A stretch of DNA of 64,000 nucleotides, from IMG/VR virus record IMGVR_UViG_3300032268_000986, positions 1 to 64,000 of that record; one strand, written 5' to 3'. The notes under the pieces are model-generated. The model worked only from the letters and a program-made list of their open reading frames with translations, made no database searches and had not been told where the DNA came from. Both the position numbers and the translations under genes were made by a program. Shown in pieces: positions 1 through 64,000 of the stretch. The number at the start of each line of letters is the position of its first letter. Positions within the stretch are counted from its first letter, which is position 1.

Positions 1-126
1 GGGTGCTGCTCCGCCACTGGGTGCTGCTCCGCCACTGGGTGCTGCTCCGCCACTGGGTGCTGCTCCGCCACTGGGTGCTGCTCCGCCACTGGGTGCTGCT
101 CCGCCACTGGGTGCTGCTCCGCCTCC
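1..126 (-). repeat. 18-nt tandem repeat (6 exact copies plus 1 variant, truncated by the window edge) encoding SGGAAP
   Basis: GGGTGCTGCTCCGCCACT units start at 1, 19, 37, 55, 73, 91 and 109; in frame with the minus-strand CDS. Confidence 0.95.
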
Positions 127-2493
127 AGCAGGTCTTGGTGCGGACGGAGCTGGTCTTGGCTGATTTTTTTCAATTCTTTCTTTAAGAACTTTGGCTTCTT
201 TTTCAAGTTCTTCGGTGCGTTTGGTTATTGTTTCGTTGACTCTCTTTAGAGACTCAATAGTGGCCTTGTCCCTAGTCTTGTCAAGTTTGGACAACTGATC
301 AGTGTTGGCTTTGAGATTTTCTCGCTGTCTGTTCAGCTGCTCATTTACTTTGTCTAATGCAGCCGTGTCTTTTTCTCGTTCTCGACGCTGATTATTTGCC
401 TCAAGGGCTGCTTGAGCGTTTGGACGTTCTCCGCCCATGCCTGCCCGAGACTGCGCTATCAAACTTTGTCTAGTTGCTTTGTCTTCGGCTGTTTTTGCTT
501 CGGCATCTTTTTTCTTAGCTTCTGCTGCCGCCGCTTCTCGTTGTGCCACAGCTACCTTGGCCGCTTCGGCTACCCGACCTTGTTCGGCCACAATGTCTTG
601 CAGACGACGTTGTTCTGCCATGGCCTCTGACAGTCTCAGGCGTGCTCTTTCGGCATCTTCCTGGGCTTTTTTACGTTCTTGTTCAGTGCCGGCTGAGTCA
701 ACCTTGGATGTGGCTGCACGTTCCTGTCTTTGCAGGCGTTGCACAGTTTGGTCAACACCAGCTGACCCGCCAACGCCTTGCAATTGATTCTTGGCTGCGT
801 CAGCTTTGCTTTGAGACTCTTTTAGTGCTTTGCGTTCGGCCTCCAGTGCTGCTTCAGCAGCTCTTTTAGCTTCTGCTGCGGCTGCACGTTCTGCGGCTGC
901 ACGTTCAGCTTCTTTCTTGGCTGCTGCTTCAGCGTCTGCTAGTTTTTGTTCTTGTTCAGTTTTCTCACGTGGTCCTATTCCCATGAATGACAACACTCGA
1001 CCCCAGAATCCCTTGGATTCATCTTTCACGCGGATCAATCCGTCGGCTGCTAAGTTGGCTTCCCTGGCCAACCTGGCCAACACGCCAGACGCTGCTTCGG
1101 ACGCTTGAGCTGCTGCCCTCATGCCTTTACGCAGTAATTCTTGCTCTTCCAGCATGGCATCTTGCTGGTTGACTATGGTCTGACTCTGTGCCCTAAGTGT
1201 TTCATCAGTTCCAAGCATTTGCTTGGCAGTTTCTTCACGAGCCTTGGCCATGCCAGCTGCAAATTTTCCATCCTTGAGCTCTTGTGCCTTGCGTTGTTCA
1301 GCATACGATCCAAATGTTTTGTCGTAGGCACCGGCTGCTGCCAAGGGCTGCATGTTCTTGTTGAAGGCAGCAACGTTGTTGTAAATGCTCTGTTGCGCAC
1401 GATCTATTTCCCCAGGAGCTTTTATTAACCCTTGCTTGACCATGTCAAACTGCTTGAGTGCATCACCTTGAGTTGCCAACAGCACTTGTCTTGCTTCTTC
1501 AGTGTTGGCAAAGCCTGACGCCAAATCAGTCATACCTTTCTGGAACTGCGGTCCCAGCTGGCCCGATGCTTGCACCATCACACGCAGATTTTCAGCTTCT
1601 TTAGTGCGTCCTTCGGCCACCAGCTGATCCAAGGTGGCAGCAAAACGCTGATTGCGCATGGCTTCTTCCATGGCTTTTTCTTGTTCTTTGCGCGAAATGC
1701 CAGTGACCTTGGTCAGTGCATCCTGCTCCATGATATACTTGCGGGCAGCTTCGGCTGTGGCTGCAAAGCCTTGTTCTTGCACACGAATAGCATTGCCCAA
1801 GCGAGTTTGCAACTTAATGTAACCCATGACAGCTTCGTTTTGCTGTTCGGCGTTGAGTCCCAGTCGCTCAAATTCAGCCCGCATGGGCTTCATGGTCTGA
1901 CGTAGATTTGCAAAGTCTGCTGACCCTTCAAACACTGTTCGGCCAAACAGGGCTAGATCTTGTGAACTTTCATTTACTAGACCTAGATACTTGTCCAGGT
2001 CTTGGAATCCAATGCCCAGCTTGTAGATGTCCTCGCCCAGTTGAGTGGTACCACCAGCTGCAACTGCACCAGATTTGGCTAGATCTTGAAAGCCTTTGTA
2101 CAGGGCATCGCCCTGTATGTTGACTTGTTTGAGTGCTTCGGCAGCAAATCCAATGGCCTTGCCTAGAGCCATGAGTGCTACTTTTACTGCAACACCACCG
2201 GGTATAATGGCCATGAGCATGGTGGTGGCCGACTGTGCAGCCCCGGCCATGCTGTCAATGCTGCTGTTGAACGCTGAGGCACCCTTTTGACCGTCGTACA
2301 TGGCCTTGGCCATTTTGCCAGCTGCATCCACCACTTGTGTGGGCGCCTTGCGCATGGCAGCCGAGAATCCTTCCACTCCCACAGTGGCATCTCGCAGGGC
2401 ATCGGCTGTGCTGCCGCTGAGACGCCCAAATCTTTCTAGTTCGTAGTTTACTTGTTCTGTTATCTCTGCCAGGCGGGGATTTTGATCTGCCAT
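1..2493 (-). CDS. Tape-measure-like tail protein (5' part; runs off the left edge of the window)
   Basis: ATG at 2493 begins MADQNPRLAEITEQVNYELERFGRLSGSTADALRDATVGVEGFSAAMRK...; the SGGAAP repeat at 1-126 lies in the same frame. Ala/Lys/Glu/Gln-rich helical composition, perfect TATAAATA upstream, adjacent to hub chaperone genes. Missing from the ORF track, presumably because no stop lies in the window; not every codon was checked. Confidence 0.75.
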   Translation of the reverse strand, partial: MADQNPRLAEITEQVNYELERFGRLSGSTADALRDATVGVEGFSAAMRKAPTQVVDAAGKMAKAMYDGQKGASAFNSSIDSMAGAAQSATTMLMAIIPGGVAVKVALMALGKAIGFAAEALKQVNIQGDALYKGFQDLAKSGAVAAGGTTQLGEDIYKLGIGFQDLDKYLGLVNESSQDLALFGRTVFEGSADFANLRQTMKPMRAEFERLGLNAEQQNEAVMGYIKLQTRLGNAIRVQEQGFAATAEAARKYIMEQDALTKVTGISRKEQEKAMEEAMRNQRFAATLDQLVAEGRTKEAENLRVMVQASGQLGPQFQKGMTDLASGFANTEEARQVLLATQGDALKQFDMVKQGLIKAPGEIDRAQQSIYNNVAAFNKNMQPLAAAGAYDKTFGSYAEQRKAQELKDGKFAAGMAKAREETAKQMLGTDETLRAQSQTIVNQQDAMLEEQELLRKGMRAAAQASEAASGVLARLAREANLAADGLIRVKDESKGFWGRVLSFMGIGPREKTEQEQKLADAEAAAKKEAERAAAERAAAAEAKRAAEAALEAERKALKESQSKADAAKNQLQGVGGSAGVDQTVQRLQRQERAATSKVDSAGTEQERKKAQEDAERARLRLSEAMAEQRRLQDIVAEQGRVAEAAKVAVAQREAAAAEAKKKDAEAKTAEDKATRQSLIAQSRAGMGGERPNAQAALEANNQRREREKDTAALDKVNEQLNRQRENLKANTDQLSKLDKTRDKATIESLKRVNETITKRTEELEKEAKVLKERIEKNQPRPAPSAPRPAGGGAAPSGGAAPSGGAAPSGGAAPSGGAAPSGGAAPSGGAAP

Positions 2494-2533: not shown

Positions 2534-3376
2534 ATGACCCCAAATGCTAACCCTTTGAACCAGTATTTTCGACAACCTGCAATTCACTTGCGTCTGCCAT
2601 CTGCTGGCAAATTCTGGCCTGATGAAGCTATTAGACGCACTGCCACCAATGAACTGCCCATTTACCCCATGACTGCCATAGACGAAATTACCTATCGCAC
2701 ACCGGATGCACTGTTCAATGGTCAGGCCGTGGTTTCAGTTATTCAAAGCTGTTGTCCAGCAATTCAGGATGCCTGGCAAACTCCGTCAGTGGACATCAAC
2801 TCACTGCTGGTGGCCATTCGCTTGGCCAGCTATGGCCATGACATGGAGATCAACACCACTTGCCCAGCCTGCTCCAACGAAGACGAGTACACCCTGGATC
2901 TGCGCACTGTGTTGGACCAACAGGTTTGTCCCGACTATGATCAGAACTTGCAAATGGGTGACTTGGAAATTGTGTTCAAGCCCATGACCTACCAAGAGCA
3001 GAACAAGACCAATGCCCTGCAATTTGAAGAACAGCGCATACTGAACATGTTGCCCAACTCAGATATTGATCCTGAAGTCAAGCTCAACAAACTCAACGAA
3101 GTGCTGCGCAAGATCACTGAAGTCACCGTGGATGCACTCACCTACAACATTCAAACTGTGCGCACACCCACTGCCATTGTGTCTGAGCCTGAACACATTC
3201 GAGAATTCTTGCTGAACTGTGATCGACGAATGTTCAATGCTGTGCGAGATCGTGTGATCGAACTGCGTGAATTCTCGGAACTCAAGCCTGTGGCAATAAA
3301 ATGCAACAACTGTGAAAACCAGTATCAACAACCACTTACCTTGGACATGGCAAGTTTTTTCGAGCACGCCTCCTGA
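2534..3376 (+). CDS. gp26: Baseplate hub assembly protein, T4 gp26-like
   Basis: N-terminal NPLxxYFRQP..LPSxG, PMTAIDE, AIRLASYG motif, two CxxC pairs (CPAC, CNNC), C-terminal SFF. Confidence 0.75.
   Translation: MTPNANPLNQYFRQPAIHLRLPSAGKFWPDEAIRRTATNELPIYPMTAIDEITYRTPDALFNGQAVVSVIQSCCPAIQDAWQTPSVDINSLLVAIRLASYGHDMEINTTCPACSNEDEYTLDLRTVLDQQVCPDYDQNLQMGDLEIVFKPMTYQEQNKTNALQFEEQRILNMLPNSDIDPEVKLNKLNEVLRKITEVTVDALTYNIQTVRTPTAIVSEPEHIREFLLNCDRRMFNAVRDRVIELREFSELKPVAIKCNNCENQYQQPLTLDMASFFEHAS
3355..3361 (+). other. Candidate -1 ribosomal frameshift heptamer T TTT TTC
   Basis: In-frame X XXY YYZ just before the stop of the gp26-like gene; the -1 frame is open into the next ORF. Confidence 0.6.
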
Positions 3377-3414: not shown

Positions 3415-3591
3415 ATGGAAAAAGAGGCCGATAGCATACGTCGGGAGGCGCTGAAACAATCATGGTACATGCGTGGTGGTCTCAGTTATGAACAAGCACT
3501 AAATCTCAGCTACAACGAACGCCTCATGATCAATGAACTCATCAAGGAAAACCTTGATACTACTAAAAAATCAGGCCTGCCTTTCTTCTAA
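3415..3591 (+). CDS. Small baseplate hub assembly chaperone, gp51-like (58 aa; possibly the C-terminal part of a frameshift fusion)
   Basis: MEKEADSIRREALKQSWYMRGGLSYEQALNLSYNERLMINELIKENLDTTKKSGLPFF; below the ORF-track cutoff; position matches gp26-gp51 synteny. Confidence 0.7.
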   Translation: MEKEADSIRREALKQSWYMRGGLSYEQALNLSYNERLMINELIKENLDTTKKSGLPFF

Positions 3592-4094
3592 TGGACCTAG
3601 CTCAAGTCACCGCAGATATTGAACAGTGGATCACAGGATTCCTGGAAGTACCGCATCCAGCCCTGGGCGGATTCTCTCCTTGTCCCTATGCACGGGCCGC
3701 AAGAATAAAACGCAGTTTTGAAATATATCTTGGCAGTGATCCCTATTTTGATCTCAAGAATCGAGCACGTTGGGGCATGGGCAATTTAGAAGTTATCATT
3801 TATGTGTATGATCCCCAGGAGTGGAGTCATGACCTGTTTAGTTCCAGCATTGAATCAGCCAACCGTGAACACCTGGTGCGCCGTGACATGCTGGCTCTGG
3901 AAGACCATCCCACAGATGTGGAAATGGTCAACGGGGTATGCATGAATCAAGGCACCTATGCGCTGGCCCTGGTGCAGAGTCTCAGTGACCTTGACACCAA
4001 GGCTCGACTCATGGCCAGCCGGGGATTCTATCATGACTGGCCGGAAGAATATCTAACTGGCCTGTTTCGGCACAGACAGGATCCCAGAACATGA
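3591..4094 (+). CDS. Hypothetical protein, DUF1415-like (CPYA motif, EDHP)
   Basis: W..FL....L..FSPCPYAR motif; start overlaps the upstream stop. Confidence 0.55.
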   Translation: MDLAQVTADIEQWITGFLEVPHPALGGFSPCPYARAARIKRSFEIYLGSDPYFDLKNRARWGMGNLEVIIYVYDPQEWSHDLFSSSIESANREHLVRRDMLALEDHPTDVEMVNGVCMNQGTYALALVQSLSDLDTKARLMASRGFYHDWPEEYLTGLFRHRQDPRT

Positions 4095-4525
4095 CATACC
4101 AGTTTGCCAGAATTGATCTTGCCAAGACCAATTACGAAATAAAAGTCAAGTGGGAATACTTACGTGACCCAGACATTCCTCAGTTGAACAGCATCTACCG
4201 AGACTACTGCAAGTACAAGCATTTTGCCAGTGTCATGCCCATGTTTGACAGTCGTTACACTGACCCCATGACCGATGTCATAGGATATTACGATGCAGAT
4301 CGTCTGGTGGCATTTTCACTGATTCGACGCTACGATGACAAGCATGCTCTGTGCGACCAGTTTGCATGGAACTACAACAATCCACGACTGCGTTTGGGGA
4401 TTGAAACAATGAAAGCCGAGTGTGCTATCTACAAGGCACGGGGATTTGAATATCTGTATCTTGAACAAGCACACTTATACAAAGCCAGCATGGATGGCTT
4501 TGAAATACTAGGACCACTGGAGTAA
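4091..4525 (+). CDS. GNAT-fold protein resembling the C-terminal domain of arginyl/leucyl-tRNA-protein transferases (ATE_C/Bpt)
   Basis: GYYDADRLVAFS and RLGIETMKAECAIYKARGFEYLYL resemble the ATE C-terminal LG..S.L.EI..A...G..Y.YLG pattern. Confidence 0.55.
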   Translation: MTYQFARIDLAKTNYEIKVKWEYLRDPDIPQLNSIYRDYCKYKHFASVMPMFDSRYTDPMTDVIGYYDADRLVAFSLIRRYDDKHALCDQFAWNYNNPRLRLGIETMKAECAIYKARGFEYLYLEQAHLYKASMDGFEILGPLE

Positions 4526-4527
4526 TC

Positions 4528-4860
4528 ATGGATTTATACACAATTTGGGCAGACAAAGAAGGTGACATCTCAGACCTTGACTGGGTAAACGGAATGAAGA
4601 GTTTTTTTGATCACTTGGTATCCGAAGACCGCATGGTATCATACCGAATCACACGCTGCAAGATGGGATTTCGTAGCATAGCAGACATGCCGGAATGGAT
4701 GATACTCATGGAGTTTCGTGACATGGGACAAATGGATTCAGCATTTCGACGAGTAGCACCACTGGAAGGTGAACTGGAAGACAAACACCGATCATTCAAT
4801 CAGTTTGTGTCAGGCACAATTCAACATGCCTTGTTTAGAGATTGGCCAGATCAATTCTAA
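4528..4860 (+). CDS. DUF6614-like small alpha/beta-barrel protein
   Basis: MDLYTIW...YRITRCKMGF...EWMILMEFRDMGQMDSAF...ALFRDWPD; RBS GGAG upstream. Confidence 0.55.
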   Translation: MDLYTIWADKEGDISDLDWVNGMKSFFDHLVSEDRMVSYRITRCKMGFRSIADMPEWMILMEFRDMGQMDSAFRRVAPLEGELEDKHRSFNQFVSGTIQHALFRDWPDQF

Positions 4861-4869
4861 CACACTATC

Positions 4870-4934
4870 TAGATCTACTTCGTAGATCTATTGACTTCGC
4901 TTTGCTCGTCAATTACTTCTTCGAAGCAAAGCGA
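4870..4934. terminator. Hairpin cluster between convergent transcription units
   Basis: TAGATCTAC-TTC-GTAGATCTA (9-bp stem, 4870-4890) and CGCTTTGCT...AGCAAAGCG inverted repeat (4898-4933). Confidence 0.5.
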
Positions 4935-5320
4935 GAACTCAGTTATCATCTAGATTAAGCGGTCACACTTTGCCCGCACAGGGCAAAGATTGGCATCATC
5001 TGAGTAGCACAGCCACATAGCGTTACAACATTACAGAGGCGGTTGTCCGGTACCTCGAGTTGCGTCTTTATCACAACGGCAATTTGCACAACATACGCTA
5101 ACACATCGTACAAACCTGCTGCCCCACGGCAGCGTCTTTTTAGCTTTTAAGATTCTGTTCAAACAATCAAATCGCAGCATTTAGATAGCGATCGTCGTCC
5201 TGTCAAGGATAGTGATTGAGTACTTTTTGCAGCAAAAGATTTACCATCCCTGAGATCCGAGATCCAGGTTTAGGGCACACGAAGTTGACCTGTGCCAGTC
5301 GTAACTGCTTGATTAACTGC
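4935..5320 (-). ncRNA. Putative large structured non-coding RNA of unknown family, directly downstream of the GIY-YIG gene
   Basis: No long ORF; at least eight stems; G-U pairs form only on the minus strand; a loop is complementary to a downstream segment (possible pseudoknot). Confidence 0.6.
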
Positions 5321-5749
5321 CTAAATTTTGTTGATTATGTGACTGCCGTGTACACGAACTTGAATATGTCCGTTGTACCAGTCTCGTGATTCTAGCACTC
5401 TGCGTGAAAATTGTTCTCTTGCTTCGATATAGCTGCATTCTGATTTGGACTTGCAGTAATAAAGTATTTCTCGTTTGAAGTTGTCTTTGCCTTGTAGTTC
5501 CACATCCCGGGAGAGTTCTGGTGAGCTACCGTAGTAGTCGCGCCAATCACTATCCACCTTGGATCGAATCTTTTTCTTCTTCTTGCTGCCGTTTTTGAGT
5601 TTGACTGTGCGTTGAGATGTTTTAGAGAATTTTGCTAGTTTTTTGCCAATGTACATGCGACCTGTGGTGATGTTTGTGATTAGATACACAAAACCCACGC
5701 AGTCTTCGGGTAAAATATCAATTGCTTGATTGTTGTATAACCATGTCAT
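5321..5749 (-). CDS. Small GIY-YIG endonuclease (Seg-like catalytic domain, ~142 aa)
   Basis: GFVYLITN...MYIGKK, YYGSS, FKREIL, E-Q and terminal YN motifs; probable start MTWLY at 5749. Confidence 0.85.
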   Translation of the reverse strand: MTWLYNNQAIDILPEDCVGFVYLITNITTGRMYIGKKLAKFSKTSQRTVKLKNGSKKKKKIRSKVDSDWRDYYGSSPELSRDVELQGKDNFKREILYYCKSKSECSYIEAREQFSRRVLESRDWYNGHIQVRVHGSHIINKI

Positions 5750-5769
5750 AGAACATGTAGTTATCACTG

Positions 5770-6783
5770 CTACCACGAAGTTGCGTAATTTCTATCCACT
5801 ACCGAGCTTTTGCATTTTGTCTGACATTCCTGCCATTTAAATGTTTGAAACTCATTGGTCCAGTACGGATCTGCCAGTGCGTCTGTTAATGTTCTTGTGT
5901 TTAAATCAAAATTGTTTGAGATTTGCTGCCAGTCTGAATTGTGATTGTATCTGTTGGCCACCCAACAGCAGGGAAATAACCTGCCGCGAGCATCAATGTA
6001 CAATCCTTTGTTGCCTATTTTGCATAACGGAGTTACTCCGTTATGACTTGAAGTTTGATTGAATAGTTGTATGTTTGTGTTGGAAACAGGTTCTTCTGCT
6101 CCGTGTGCAGTAAATGCAGTTGTTTCACGTTCAAAACGATGTGTACTGCTGATATATTTCATGCTGGGTTGCAATGGATCGTCTACACCGTAAGATGGAT
6201 ACACACTGCCAAACTTGGTACTCTTGGTCAACTGAAAGCGATCAACACCCATTGACTGTGCAAACTCTTTCATGTGATCCAAGTGTTCTTCGTTGAACTT
6301 GAAAGCTATGGCAGCCCATACAATTTTGCAACGGCTTGATGCTCGTAGAGATGTCATGCCATTCACAATGCTATCATAGTCGCTGTTGACACGATACATG
6401 TTGTTGCTGGTGTTGTCATGCCCGTCTACACTAAAATGCACACTGTCATTGGAATCTAACACTGTTCCCAGTTCCGTCCACCAAGCGGTTTTCTTATGTG
6501 ACCCGTTGGTGACAACAACAATCTCTACAGGTCGGATGCTTTTGATGTGTTGGATAACCGGAATCAAGTCATGTGCATAGATGGGATCGCCATCGTCACC
6601 ACAGAATGTAATTTTTTCTACGTTGTCTTGTACAAATTCTGATGTGAAATTACGTTTGAAGAATTCCAAGTTCAGTTCTGTGTTGACCAGACTGTGGGGT
6701 ACTTCTTGTCGAGAACATCGGGGGCACCGCAAGGTACACTTGCTGGAAATCTCAATGTGAAAATGCCAAGTCGCTAGGGTCAT
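5770..6783 (-). CDS. Radical SAM protein with C-terminal SPASM/twitch domain
   Basis: CTLRCPRC, CGDDGDP, TNGS, and C-terminal C..GRLFPCC..CQTKC. Confidence 0.85.
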   Translation of the reverse strand: MTLATWHFHIEISSKCTLRCPRCSRQEVPHSLVNTELNLEFFKRNFTSEFVQDNVEKITFCGDDGDPIYAHDLIPVIQHIKSIRPVEIVVVTNGSHKKTAWWTELGTVLDSNDSVHFSVDGHDNTSNNMYRVNSDYDSIVNGMTSLRASSRCKIVWAAIAFKFNEEHLDHMKEFAQSMGVDRFQLTKSTKFGSVYPSYGVDDPLQPSMKYISSTHRFERETTAFTAHGAEEPVSNTNIQLFNQTSSHNGVTPLCKIGNKGLYIDARGRLFPCCWVANRYNHNSDWQQISNNFDLNTRTLTDALADPYWTNEFQTFKWQECQTKCKSSVVDRNYATSW

Positions 6784-8855
6784 GCAATTTCTACATCTGT
6801 GTTGTAACTGGTAAAGCCGTTTTCTTTGATGACTTTGAGAATGTTTTCCACACGCCCAGCTAACTCATCTCTGTGGCTCACTAGCCAAATACTCTTGTGG
6901 CGTTCTCGAGTCATCTTCTTGAGCAAGCCCAGGGCATTTTCTACACCTTGTGTGTCTAGGCCGTTGTCTATGAGTTCGTCAATGAACAACAAGTTGATGG
7001 GTGAGTATAAACTTTCCCACACGTCACGGAATGCCCAGCTCATGCTTAGGATCAATCGATTGCGTTCACCACGGCTCAAATTGTCAAAATCCAGCTCACG
7101 ACCCAGTTCCTCAATGCTAACACTCAAATCGTTCTGAAATTTCACAGTGTGCGGCAGGCCAATACGATCCAAGTAGTGGGTAAGACGTGCGTTTAGATAA
7201 CTCAAGTTCTGATCAATAATTTTCTTGCGCACAAACGAATCCTTGGAGGTCAACAGTTTGAGCAAGAATTCTTGATGTTCTTGTATACGGGTAAGTTCGT
7301 TAATGGTATCATAGCTGACCACTTGCAGTGCTTGTCGTTGCATGTCTGCAATTTGTTCAGTGTATGGATCAGTCTCCAAGGCCTTGCGCTCAATTTGATC
7401 TACCAGGCTGGCAACTCTACTGCGATGTTCAATGGCTTCTCGTTCGGTATCATAGTGTGTGCGCGGCTGTGTCCCCAACACAACTTCTGTATGCTCAGTT
7501 AACTGCTCGGCAAAAGGATTGATTTCTGCTTGCTTGTCTTCCCATACTTTTTTCAAGTTAGCAACATCGCCGCTGTGTCGGATTGCCTCAGCTTCAGTTT
7601 TGTACAGCGGCTTGGGTTTTACCGCGGCAACAAAAATTTCAACTTGCCTGAGTTCATTCCACTGATTTGTCAATGCAGTTGCATGTGCTTGAGCATCTTC
7701 AAGCATTTTTTCTTTGTCGGTCAGCACTCGAATATGTTGATCATCATGAAACTCTTGACCACATGCATAACACTTGTGATCCAGCAAGGATTCAATTTCT
7801 GCTGAAAGTTTTTTAACAAGTTTGTCTTCCTTGTCAATTTCTTTGGTCAGGCGTGCAAGTTCACGATCTCGATCTTCAAGCTCCTTGGACTTTTGTAGGT
7901 ACTCATTGAGTTGCCGCCATGTATCAAGTTCAGTTTCAATGTCGTACTGATTTTTGTCTAAATAAGCACGTCCGGCAGCATCAACATCGGCATCATGCTT
8001 TTGTTGCCAGGCTGTACTGCGAGCAACCAATGCAGTGTGTGTGTCCTTTTGCTGCTTCAGTGTGTTCCAAATTACCAAATCTTTGTGTGCAGAAAGTTCA
8101 GCCTCAATGTCCAGCGCACTGAGGTCATTGTATTCAGTCATGACTCGTTCAAGATCTTCACTGTGTTTTTTCTGCCACAGGGTTTGTCTGCGACGAAGCC
8201 CATCTATTTGTTCTTCTATTCTGGTGTTGGCTTCTTGCACTGCTCGGATACGAAACTCTTCCTGAGTAACAGCATCCTTGGTCTGGCGGTTTAATTCTTT
8301 GACACGATCAGCTTTTTCACTGAGCATGGTAATGCCCAACAGTTGTTCAATGATGGTGCGCTGGTCAAGGGCCTTGAGACTCAAAAACGGTTCGGTATAA
8401 GTGTTCAAGGCCAGCACATGTTTGAACATGTCATGACTCATGTTCATGATGCGTTCAATGGCATCTTGGGTTTCTCGACTGTCGCCCTGGGCTTCGTCAG
8501 TGGCAGACTTTTCTTCATTGTTGACATAGAATTTCAGCACATTGGGTTTGCGTCCGCGCTCAATTCGGTATTCAACACTGTTTACAGAAAAATCAAGACT
8601 GACCAGCATGCCTTTACCATTGGTCTTGTTCACAAGATTGTCCTTGCGAATGTTGCTCAAGGCATTGCCGTACAATGCGTAACTCAGAGCATTGATGATT
8701 GTGGTCTTACCAGTACCATTGCGACTGCCATCGCCTCCTAGGTCTAAATTTTCACCCAGCACCAGTGTGAGATCTTTGCGATCAAAATTAATACCTTGTG
8801 TGGCATTACCCACACTCATGAAGTTTCGAACAGTGAGATTTTTAATTTGAATCAT
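6780..8855 (-). CDS. gp46: Recombination endonuclease ATPase subunit (gp46/SbcC/Rad50-like)
   Basis: Walker A RNGTGKTT, CYAC zinc hook, LSRGE signature, Walker B LLFIDE, VSH H-loop. Confidence 0.95.
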   Translation of the reverse strand: MIQIKNLTVRNFMSVGNATQGINFDRKDLTLVLGENLDLGGDGSRNGTGKTTIINALSYALYGNALSNIRKDNLVNKTNGKGMLVSLDFSVNSVEYRIERGRKPNVLKFYVNNEEKSATDEAQGDSRETQDAIERIMNMSHDMFKHVLALNTYTEPFLSLKALDQRTIIEQLLGITMLSEKADRVKELNRQTKDAVTQEEFRIRAVQEANTRIEEQIDGLRRRQTLWQKKHSEDLERVMTEYNDLSALDIEAELSAHKDLVIWNTLKQQKDTHTALVARSTAWQQKHDADVDAAGRAYLDKNQYDIETELDTWRQLNEYLQKSKELEDRDRELARLTKEIDKEDKLVKKLSAEIESLLDHKCYACGQEFHDDQHIRVLTDKEKMLEDAQAHATALTNQWNELRQVEIFVAAVKPKPLYKTEAEAIRHSGDVANLKKVWEDKQAEINPFAEQLTEHTEVVLGTQPRTHYDTEREAIEHRSRVASLVDQIERKALETDPYTEQIADMQRQALQVVSYDTINELTRIQEHQEFLLKLLTSKDSFVRKKIIDQNLSYLNARLTHYLDRIGLPHTVKFQNDLSVSIEELGRELDFDNLSRGERNRLILSMSWAFRDVWESLYSPINLLFIDELIDNGLDTQGVENALGLLKKMTRERHKSIWLVSHRDELAGRVENILKVIKENGFTSYNTDVEIA

Positions 8856-63175: not shown

Positions 63176-64000
63176 TCAGAGGTAACTTTCTAGCCCACCG
63201 CGTCGACGAATGTCTTGTGTGCAGCATGAGATGCCACCGTCCCAGAAATAGCTGTGACGCAGTTCTGAGATGATGGGTTCAATGCCGTGTCTGCGACAGT
63301 AGTCAAACACCTGTTTGTTGTAGGCTGAGAAAATCACATGTGATTCGTCCAGCACAAGACAATTGACATCAAACACAGTTTCAGCCACAAAGCCAGTCCA
63401 GTTCTTGAGATAGGTGTTCACAAAGTCAGTGAACTCAGGTGTGGGTGTTTGTCCTTGCACGTACCATGCCCCAGGATTGTTTTCATACTTGAACTTGCCC
63501 ACTTCCATAGCAGCCCAGATTGAACTGTCCCATACCTTGCACACATCCCAGCCCGGGAAGTCGGCAGCAAGGTCCAGATTTACATCATGCTTGCTGCTCA
63601 ACAACACACCGGGTTTTAGGATAGCAAACACAGCATCGCCGTGTCCGTCTGTGATGGCTTCGTGTATGCGATATTCAGCACCCAGCACATTGTCCACGAT
63701 CCAACGTGTTTGATCCGGGCGCAAAAAATCTGAGTTGTCAAAGAACACATCACGACCCACTCGCACAATGCATGATGCCGACGCACCATTTAGGATGCAG
63801 TTCTCATCCCAGCCTGTGGCACCGTGTGGATTGATCACACTGCCCGGCTGTGCTGCTGCATACTCGGCACAGAGTGAATCAAGTTCCTGCATGGGCAACA
63901 CACGCAACAATTTATCGCCCAGTGTGATCTGCCAGTCTCTTGGTGTGAGTGGCGGCAGTGGAGCACCACTGCCGTTTATTTGTCCTTGAATGAATTGATC
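63176..64000 (-). CDS. Amidinotransferase (glycine/inosamine-phosphate amidinotransferase family), 5'-truncated by the window edge
   Basis: PRD, GHGDAVF, FDVNCL, WDGGISCCTQDIRR; the frame stays open from 63910 to the window end. Confidence 0.85.
   Translation of the reverse strand, partial: DQFIQGQINGSGAPLPPLTPRDWQITLGDKLLRVLPMQELDSLCAEYAAAQPGSVINPHGATGWDENCILNGASASCIVRVGRDVFFDNSDFLRPDQTRWIVDNVLGAEYRIHEAITDGHGDAVFAILKPGVLLSSKHDVNLDLAADFPGWDVCKVWDSSIWAAMEVGKFKYENNPGAWYVQGQTPTPEFTDFVNTYLKNWTGFVAETVFDVNCLVLDESHVIFSAYNKQVFDYCRRHGIEPIISELRHSYFWDGGISCCTQDIRRRGGLESYL

Follow-up and report, generated by a model that had tools for sequence, protein, structure and literature searches.

A three-gene phage cassette with a minimal ATE/Bpt-like GNAT lobe and a possible role in arginine- or guanidino-centred modification

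The first 64 kb of the phage record IMGVR_UViG_3300032268_000986 (342,865 bp, judged 99% complete), referred to below as the window, belong to a giant freshwater phage and contain three adjoining genes on the + strand. These open reading frames (ORFs) are ORF1 (3591-4094, 167 amino acids, aa), ORF2 (4091-4525, 144 aa) and ORF3 (4528-4860, 110 aa). Judged by its family relationships, ORF2 is a true but minimal, stand-alone relative of the aminoacyl-tRNA transferases ATE1 and Bpt and a candidate aminoacyl-tRNA-dependent transferase. ORF1 is a candidate small thiolate-heme oxygenase, and ORF3 is a member of DUF6614. We tentatively favour the explanation that the three genes form a self-contained enzymatic cassette for an arginine- or guanidino-centred modification, in the style of the AglC and AglA enzymes of argolaphos biosynthesis.

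Charged tRNA is put to non-ribosomal use in cell-wall, lipid, N-degron and antibiotic pathways. Within the reach of our literature and database searches, no such use is known in phages, and the literature search brought up nothing on phage ATE-like enzymes or on the function of DUF1415. Neither the region nor three divergent ORF2 proteins matched anything in the GenBank phage collection at the DNA or protein level, and BFVD contains one uncharacterised family member. The parts of the cassette are known superfamilies; what is new is their minimal size and that phages keep them in fixed association. If a bolder version of the favoured explanation, set out below, is true, the cassette would represent the first known case of tRNA-dependent, non-ribosomal aminoacyl transfer in a phage, and ORF2 the smallest working member of the ATE family. 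Since the cassette is abundant, extremely conserved and portable between phage lineages, it probably does something important in the infection of freshwater and marine bacteria. It also offers a first functional handle on DUF6614 and DUF1415.

ORF2 as a minimal transferase lobe

The assignment of ORF2 is carried by its family. Relatives at 46-48% identity exceed the gathering score of the Pfam family ATE_C (33.5 and 28.8 bits), and in longer relatives of 225-268 aa ATE_C is found in the C-terminal half. A family profile built from 24 members and compared with PDB gave only ATE1 chains as top matches (E 0.0056). For the window protein itself ATE_C is likewise the only Pfam family, at a score below threshold (15.2 bits vs a cut-off of 25, E 0.035); single-sequence searches of PDB and NCBIfam with ORF2 returned no match. 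In metagenomes, a word-indexed search revealed about 2,900 ORF2 clusters at 90% identity and an exhaustive search 135 clusters at 50% identity, all of them uncultured.

In the profile alignment with klAte1, residues W93, T106 and E110 of ORF2 correspond to Trp260, Ser273 and Glu277. Y130-K131 were matched to Tyr303-Lys304 by motif; as this pair lies just outside the hidden Markov model alignment, we infer the equivalence. The roles of all these klAte1 residues were established by mutagenesis (PMC9351520). Trp260 contacts the tRNA, and Glu277 is the sole charged residue in the pocket for the arginine of Arg-tRNA, where Bpt, which transfers leucine, has a Gln (PMC9351520). ORF2 thus shows the Glu of Ate1 in the donor pocket. 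Conservation was counted over 181-185 aligned members of 190 distinct family sequences and amounts to 182/185 for W93, 164/184 for Thr or Ser at position 106, 177/184 for E110, 178/181 for Y130 and 179/181 for K131. W93, E110, Y130 and K131 are consequently 96-100% conserved throughout the family.

The predicted structure is a GNAT fold of one lobe and equals the C-terminal lobe of two-lobed aminoacyl-tRNA transferases. Compared to the MprF synthase domain, FemX and Sbb17/Sba18, only their C-terminal lobe is represented, and the N-terminal lobe that completes the cleft is missing. ORF2 has the GNAT core and the SLG-type loop in common with Ate1 and Bpt, as well as the Trp that contacts the tRNA and the catalytic Tyr-Lys pair, whereas with 144 aa it is considerably smaller than Bpt (~240 aa) and Ate1 (~500 aa). 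The second difference is the absence of ATE_N. This domain contributes a Cys-rich (Cys4) metal site and an acceptor pocket for acidic N-termini, formed in klAte1 by Cys23/26/95/96, Arg80, Tyr25 and Tyr87 (PMC9351520). Neither the acceptor pocket nor the zinc domain of ATE_N is present in the 144 aa of ORF2, and the N-terminal extensions of the long forms (55-100 aa) gave no ATE_N match (best E 0.38). Also unlike Ate1 and Bpt, ORF2 has a heme-oxygenase-like companion gene, except where loci retain only ORF2 and ORF3 (L131, L157).

Because relatives pass ATE_C, the profile finds ATE1 only, the Ate1 residues are kept and the model corresponds to a single transferase lobe, ORF2 can be classified on sequence and model grounds as a genuine ATE/Bpt relative. 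The same four lines bear out the initial annotation, which had described ORF2 as a 144-aa ATE/Bpt-like GNAT half-enzyme. ORF2 could thereby serve as a natural minimal ATE-type enzyme for asking what the acceptor-binding half adds.

The partner proteins ORF1 and ORF3

For ORF1 the structural model gives more than the sequence. Compared with an Atlas cluster annotated as DUF1415 and DUF6875, the model reaches a template-modelling (TM) score of 0.83; it shows a sheet of four strands with three helices on one face and two on the other, in the secondary-structure order of the AglA-type fold. AglA, the prototype YqcI/YcgG enzyme, likewise packs three and two helices against the two sides of a four-stranded sheet, uses Cys44 as heme ligand and hydroxylates the guanidine of AMPn-Arg (PMC12866846). 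It was found for the ORF1 model by the exhaustive structure aligner only; Foldseek against PDB found nothing (TM ≤0.32), and the ORF1 family profile gave nothing significant against PDB sequences. In Pfam, ORF1 stays below the DUF6875 threshold (17.8 bits vs 24.5) and the ORF1 homologue of locus L104 below the DUF1415 cut-off (17 bits vs 26), and a search of the phage genome with the Pfam DUF1415 model found nothing.

The invariant Cys31-Pro32 of ORF1 follows directly after helix 1, within the stretch aligned to the N-terminus of DUF6875. DUF6875 was renamed cytochrome P422, a Cys-ligated heme family with the motif RxGxVCP that acts on tryptophan (bioRxiv 10.64898/2025.12.11.692455). Cys31 is placed like the axial Cys of AglA (Cys44) and P422 (Cys58), by its position after helix 1 and not residue by residue. 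With P422, DUF1415 and YqcI/YcgG, ORF1 has the fold and the helix-loop-Cys-Pro position in common, and it falls into the size class of DUF1415 (~170-190 aa); in place of the P422 motif it carries (L)NGxxPCP(Y/F)A. Further invariants are an Asp-His-Pro element as well as Glu and Asn residues. The model thus points towards a candidate small thiolate-heme oxygenase of the AglA/YqcI, DUF1415 and P422 kind, which would bind heme through Cys31 and, with its 167 residues, would represent the recently recognised thiolate-heme 'sandwich' enzymes in a small form.

ORF3 matches DUF6614 (PF20319) over its full length with 74.1 bits vs a cut-off of 25 (E 1.2e-20). Its alignment contains a dense Arg/Lys/His set of invariant residues (R40, T42, R43, K45, H87, H100, R104 and, in addition, D105). 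The family profile revealed no relative in PDB. Around bacterial DUF6614 genes, Ppx/GppA, a fatty-acid hydroxylase, ALAD, ADH, CMD and a pyridoxal-phosphate enzyme were encountered with no shared theme, and neither ORF1 nor ORF2 was found beside them in the neighbourhoods examined. The sole literature mention of DUF6614 concerns Druad1, a 44-aa protein with no homologues and a soft prediction; a role of DUF6614 as anti-Druantia factor was rejected on these grounds.

Both partners had been labelled before. The description of ORF3 as DUF6614-like proved right at a score far above the cut-off. That of ORF1 as a DUF1415-like CPYA protein is correct at the level of the fold and for the invariant Cys-Pro, and is not backed by a Pfam match above the cut-off.

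Conservation of the cassette across phages

The three genes are translationally coupled: ORF1 and ORF2 overlap by ATGA at 4091-4094, and ORF2 and ORF3 are separated by 2 nt. The low ratio of nonsynonymous to synonymous differences (pN/pS) at nearly saturated synonymous sites (pS 0.65-0.74), together with the ~2,900 ORF2 homologues in metagenomes, shows that ORF1, ORF2 and ORF3 are real genes and not chance ORFs. In comparison to 97-105 distinct relatives, pN/pS relative to the window amounts to 0.31 for ORF1, 0.23 for ORF2 and 0.15 for ORF3, the most conserved of the three proteins, and to 0.43 for the adjacent baseplate hub gene. All three are therefore under stronger purifying selection than this structural gene.

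Linkage was followed in the 80 closest IMG/VR loci; distant loci were reached by a further scan that started from divergent members and by looking up contigs. In 80/80 of the closest loci the hub gene, a 58-aa ORF, ORF1, ORF2 and ORF3 are kept wherever the contig is long enough, with identities of 82-99% for ORF2 and ORF3 and 51-62% for the hub gene. Farther away the cassette occurs without the hub gene; in L086-L090 and L188 it is flanked by ribonucleotide reductase genes on one side and glutaredoxin/PAAR genes on the other. Other loci contain ORF1 and ORF2 only (L082, L104) or the two-gene set ORF2-ORF3 mentioned above, or show the order ORF2-ORF3-ORF1 (L134, L149); in L171-L173 and L177 a long-form ORF2 faces ORF1 in convergent orientation. 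That the gene set is kept through such rearrangement speaks for a functional unit, whose core would be ORF1-ORF2. The tight coupling that had been noted from the window alone is confirmed by the junctions, and the three genes are found together well beyond their own lineage, in permuted and convergent orders as well, so that the absence of co-occurrence elsewhere, which the initial annotation had named as evidence against its reading, was not observed. A complex prediction for ORF1 and ORF2 (score 0.00 vs a mark of 0.32) gives no verdict and counts neither way.

A fourth gene (~340-410 aa) recurs beside the cassette in many phages. It was found behind ORF3, inserted between two cassette genes (ORF2 and ORF3, or ORF1 and ORF2), and divergent or convergent on the other strand; in all, at least five different arrangements place it within 1.5 kb of the cassette. 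Its profile matches L-arginine:glycine amidinotransferase (AGAT) in PDB with E 1.7e-23 and over the full length, and HsvA, SxtG and StrB1 as well. In common with these enzymes are the His-x-Asp and His-Cys motifs, with the catalytic residues H232, D234, H368 and C369 invariant; an equivalent of Asp254 is not evident. The gene differs from AGAT-type enzymes in having no Pfam match and in occurring as several paralogues per phage genome; it corresponds to phrog_25854 of 'unknown function'. Its sporadic occurrence, two insertion points and multiple copies had raised the possibility that this neighbour of ~385 aa is a mobile, homing-endonuclease-like gene, which the full-length amidinotransferase match rejects.

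The genome of the window contains four such paralogues, and 0/4 adjoin the cassette. One lies at the end of the window on the - strand (63176-64000, extending past the window end to 64219); the others are located at 130669-131685, 233692-234852 and 236358-237278 of the genome. These paralogues are candidate partners of the cassette, acting in trans.

Some observations from the distant loci stand apart. In one lineage a 227-aa protein (phrog_3577) is encoded between ORF2 and ORF3 (L089:2107-2793, L090:6410-7093, L188:5321-6004) and may be a further optional component of the cassette. In locus L174, which holds the most distant long-form ATE_C gene, a convergent 181-aa gene was considered as ORF1 and rejected (hhalign probability 3.9%). 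Several cassette-bearing phage contigs (L179, L180, L181, L183, L188) were binned into bacterial metagenome-assembled genomes of different phyla. L179 and L180 are in a Haliscomenobacter-labelled genome and L188 is in one of the Legionellales; one Haliscomenobacter bin holds two different cassette-bearing phage contigs of 148 kb and 183 kb. These labels may be binning artefacts or host hints.

Proposed chemistry and alternative explanations

In the argolaphos pathway, Arg, ATP, tRNA, ArgRS and AglC together yield AMPn-Arg, on which AglA subsequently performs an N-hydroxylation. The gene cluster contains a PF13480 GNAT, proposed as peptide aminoacyl-tRNA ligase, beside a YqcI protein (PMC8976061); this GNAT, named AlpF there, we take to be AglC. 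Common to both systems would be a GNAT-fold tRNA-dependent transferase beside a 'sandwich' thiolate-heme protein and an arginine moiety, with the phage side predicted. The differences are substantial: AglC (AlpF, 342 aa, PF13480) is two-lobed and AglA comprises 243-274 aa, whereas the phage proteins are about half that size and show no detectable sequence similarity to them. Moreover, argolaphos is made by a Streptomyces cluster with phosphonate genes, which the phage cassette does not have.

Transferred to the phage, ORF2 would keep the half of the enzyme that holds the aminoacyl-tRNA 3' end and the donor amino acid, and would move the aminoacyl group onto an acceptor amine. Because Glu110 is the counterpart of Ate1 Glu277, the predicted donor is Arg, possibly Lys. 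ORF1 might hydroxylate or otherwise oxidise the amino-acid (guanidino) moiety, either before or after transfer, while the DUF6614 protein could act as an accessory subunit in substrate presentation or redox. The AGAT-like L-arginine amidinotransferase may supply or remodel the guanidino group. Three independent leads point towards arginine or guanidino chemistry, namely the equivalence of Glu110 and Glu277, the resemblance of the ORF1 fold to AglA and the neighbouring amidinotransferase, an enzyme type that depends on arginine. Four tRNA-Arg genes (anticodons cct, tcg, acg and tct) among the 33 tRNA genes at positions 91040-109238 of the phage genome were counted in support as well. The catalytic steps, their order, arginine specificity and heme binding are predictions from the homology, folds, conserved residues and gene linkage of the cassette, and they translate into experiments: Glu110 would select an Arg-type donor, Lys131 would be catalytic, Cys31 would hold the heme and the amidinotransferase would act as a partner.

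Several points weigh against this explanation. The arginine call depends on one residue equivalence taken from a marginal profile alignment. The ATE_C score of the window protein is sub-threshold, ORF1 falls below every Pfam cut-off, and with 167 aa it is far smaller than AglA (243 aa). Structure by itself does not part users of aminoacyl-tRNA from users of acyl-coenzyme A (acyl-CoA); VipF and N-myristoyltransferase lie within ~1 Z unit of MprF. DUF6614 genes also stand alone in bacterial chromosomes, in unrelated contexts. In the lineage of the window itself, 120/136 loci have no AGAT-like gene nearby. Finally, the searches of the GenBank phage collection described above returned no cultured phage with the cassette.

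The initial annotation had left open whether the transferase tags host or phage proteins or modifies a small molecule. Owing to the thiolate-heme oxygenase-like fold of ORF1 and the recurrent amidinotransferase, the evidence leans somewhat from pure N-degron chemistry to arginine/guanidino chemistry of the small-molecule type. A bolder version of the favoured explanation, which appears doubtful, assumes a portable three- to four-enzyme pathway of large aquatic phages, consisting of a minimal Arg-tRNA transferase, a miniature thiolate-heme oxygenase for guanidines, the DUF6614 protein and the amidinotransferase. In the course of infection it would form N-oxygenated arginyl or guanidino adducts with a molecule of the host or the phage, and the product might serve as an antimetabolite, as a modification of DNA or nucleotides or as a new type of protein tag.

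N-degron tagging is the foremost alternative, although we consider it unlikely. ORF2 would add Arg or Leu from charged tRNA to protein N-termini and thus deliver proteins to ClpS/ClpAP; ORF1 would beforehand oxidise an N-terminal residue to yield the acceptor, a step that in eukaryotes thiol dioxygenases perform ahead of ATE1. The only sequence-level relatives of ORF2 are indeed N-degron transferases, and the same genome encodes a tmRNA (105048-105526, tag peptide ANDSQFALAA) and a bona fide homologue of ClpS, the adaptor of the bacterial N-degron pathway (243858-244094 of the genome, - strand; PF02617, 84.9 bits). ClpS is also present in 2/5 other cassette-bearing phage records searched, and in L174 it lies 3.5 kb from the long-form ATE_C gene. 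However, ATE_N, the carrier of the acidic-N-terminus pocket and the Cys4 site, is not part of ORF2 and is unrecognisable in the long forms. ClpS is 240 kb away from the cassette and missing from a 98%-complete cassette record, and no homologue of Aat (L/F-transferase) was found in the phage genome. Recurrent amidinotransferase and heme-oxygenase partners are, in addition, typical of small-molecule pathways.

It is improbable that ORF2 is an ordinary acyl-CoA-dependent GNAT acyltransferase whose likeness to ATE reflects shared fold ancestry only. The pyrophosphate loop Q/R-x-x-G-x-G/A that follows strand 4 in CoA-binding GNATs was not found in ORF2 or its family: aligned on the conserved G103, the first motif position is occupied by Leu, and the sixth varies (E, H, K, N, R and others) and is not Gly/Ala as a rule. 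None of the acetyltransferase Pfam families is matched by the ORF2 family, only ATE_C and, in a single relative, PF13480 (FemAB-like), and the ATE-specific Trp, Glu and Tyr-Lys are conserved. An ordinary acetyl-CoA GNAT, the structural outcome that had been named as contradicting the half-enzyme proposal, is thus not what we find.

A nucleotide or the phage DNA as acceptor appears just as improbable. An aminoacyl or guanidino base adduct would be a hypermodification escaping host restriction, and the very high conservation would suit such an invariant substrate. Distant cassettes lie amid nucleotide-metabolism genes (ribonucleotide reductase subunits, MazG, glutaredoxin), and in the window the cassette is followed by radical SAM/SPASM and recombination genes. 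This support is purely contextual, however, and the neighbours vary by lineage; no DNA- or nucleotide-binding feature was found in the cassette, and the genome was not searched for base-hydroxymethylase or kinase genes. A last alternative is that the cassette encodes accessories of the baseplate or virion that have no enzymatic function and are co-expressed with hub genes, as the orientation directly behind the hub gene with its late-promoter-like boxes and a nearby PAAR gene in another lineage might suggest. This is very hard to reconcile with the enzyme folds and conserved catalytic-type residues of ORF1 and ORF2, with the shift of the cassette between unrelated neighbourhoods and with a conservation above that of the adjoining structural genes.

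Genomic and transcriptional context

Upstream of the cassette and on the same strand lies a T4-type baseplate hub gene (2534-3376, +; T4_baseplate PF12322, E 1.7e-14; phrog_150 'baseplate hub'). Between them a 58-aa ORF (3415-3591, +) overlaps the start of ORF1 with its stop (TAATG at 3589-3593). It was seen only in loci with the hub gene and is missing from distant cassettes, as expected for a partner of the hub gene and not of the cassette. Upstream of the hub gene, TATAAATA is found at 2518-2525 on the - strand and, with one mismatch, the promoter-like TATAAGTA at 2505-2512 on the + strand. The hub gene is probably the first gene of a + strand transcription unit shared with the cassette. 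The placement of the cassette behind late hub genes, as described initially, holds for position; late expression is plausible from the TATAAATA and TATAAGTA boxes, from which its timing is deduced.

On the opposite (-) strand, a tape-measure/gp29-like ORF upstream of the cassette runs off the window start. Its 3' part (window 1-250) encodes a perfect tandem repeat with a 7-residue Gly/Ala/Pro/Ser unit, seen in several frames.

Directly 3' of the ORF3 stop, two strong stem-loops (4870-4934, +) possibly mark a transcript end or processing site. The RNA fold of 4858-5150 has a z-score of -3.87, and 0/200 shuffles fold as well. A terminator-like hairpin with a T-run follows farther downstream at 5117-5134. 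A 248-nt contig from a lake metatranscriptome is identical to 4399-4646 with zero mismatches and crosses the ORF2/ORF3 junction; as DNA carry-over is possible, it is only suggestive of transcription of the cassette.

Beyond the cassette, a SegE-type GIY-YIG homing endonuclease (PF19835, E 2.9e-33; 5321-5776, -) overlaps the end of a radical SAM/SPASM gene (5770-6783, -), next to which a gp46-like recombination ATPase is encoded (6780-8855). In sister phages the radical SAM gene is swapped for very different versions with 23-42% identity.

A full-length copy of the Polynucleobacter-1 RNA (Rfam RF01718) was detected at 5161-5300 on the - strand, with 113.9 bits vs a gathering score of 37 (E 5.5e-26); it is located in the 460 non-coding nucleotides that follow the cassette, immediately downstream of the segE-like GIY-YIG gene. 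This suggests an orphan motif carried by phages, or a hint at the host. A contig from a lake metatranscriptome (263 nt, 1 mismatch) covers 5049-5300 and with it the region of this RNA.

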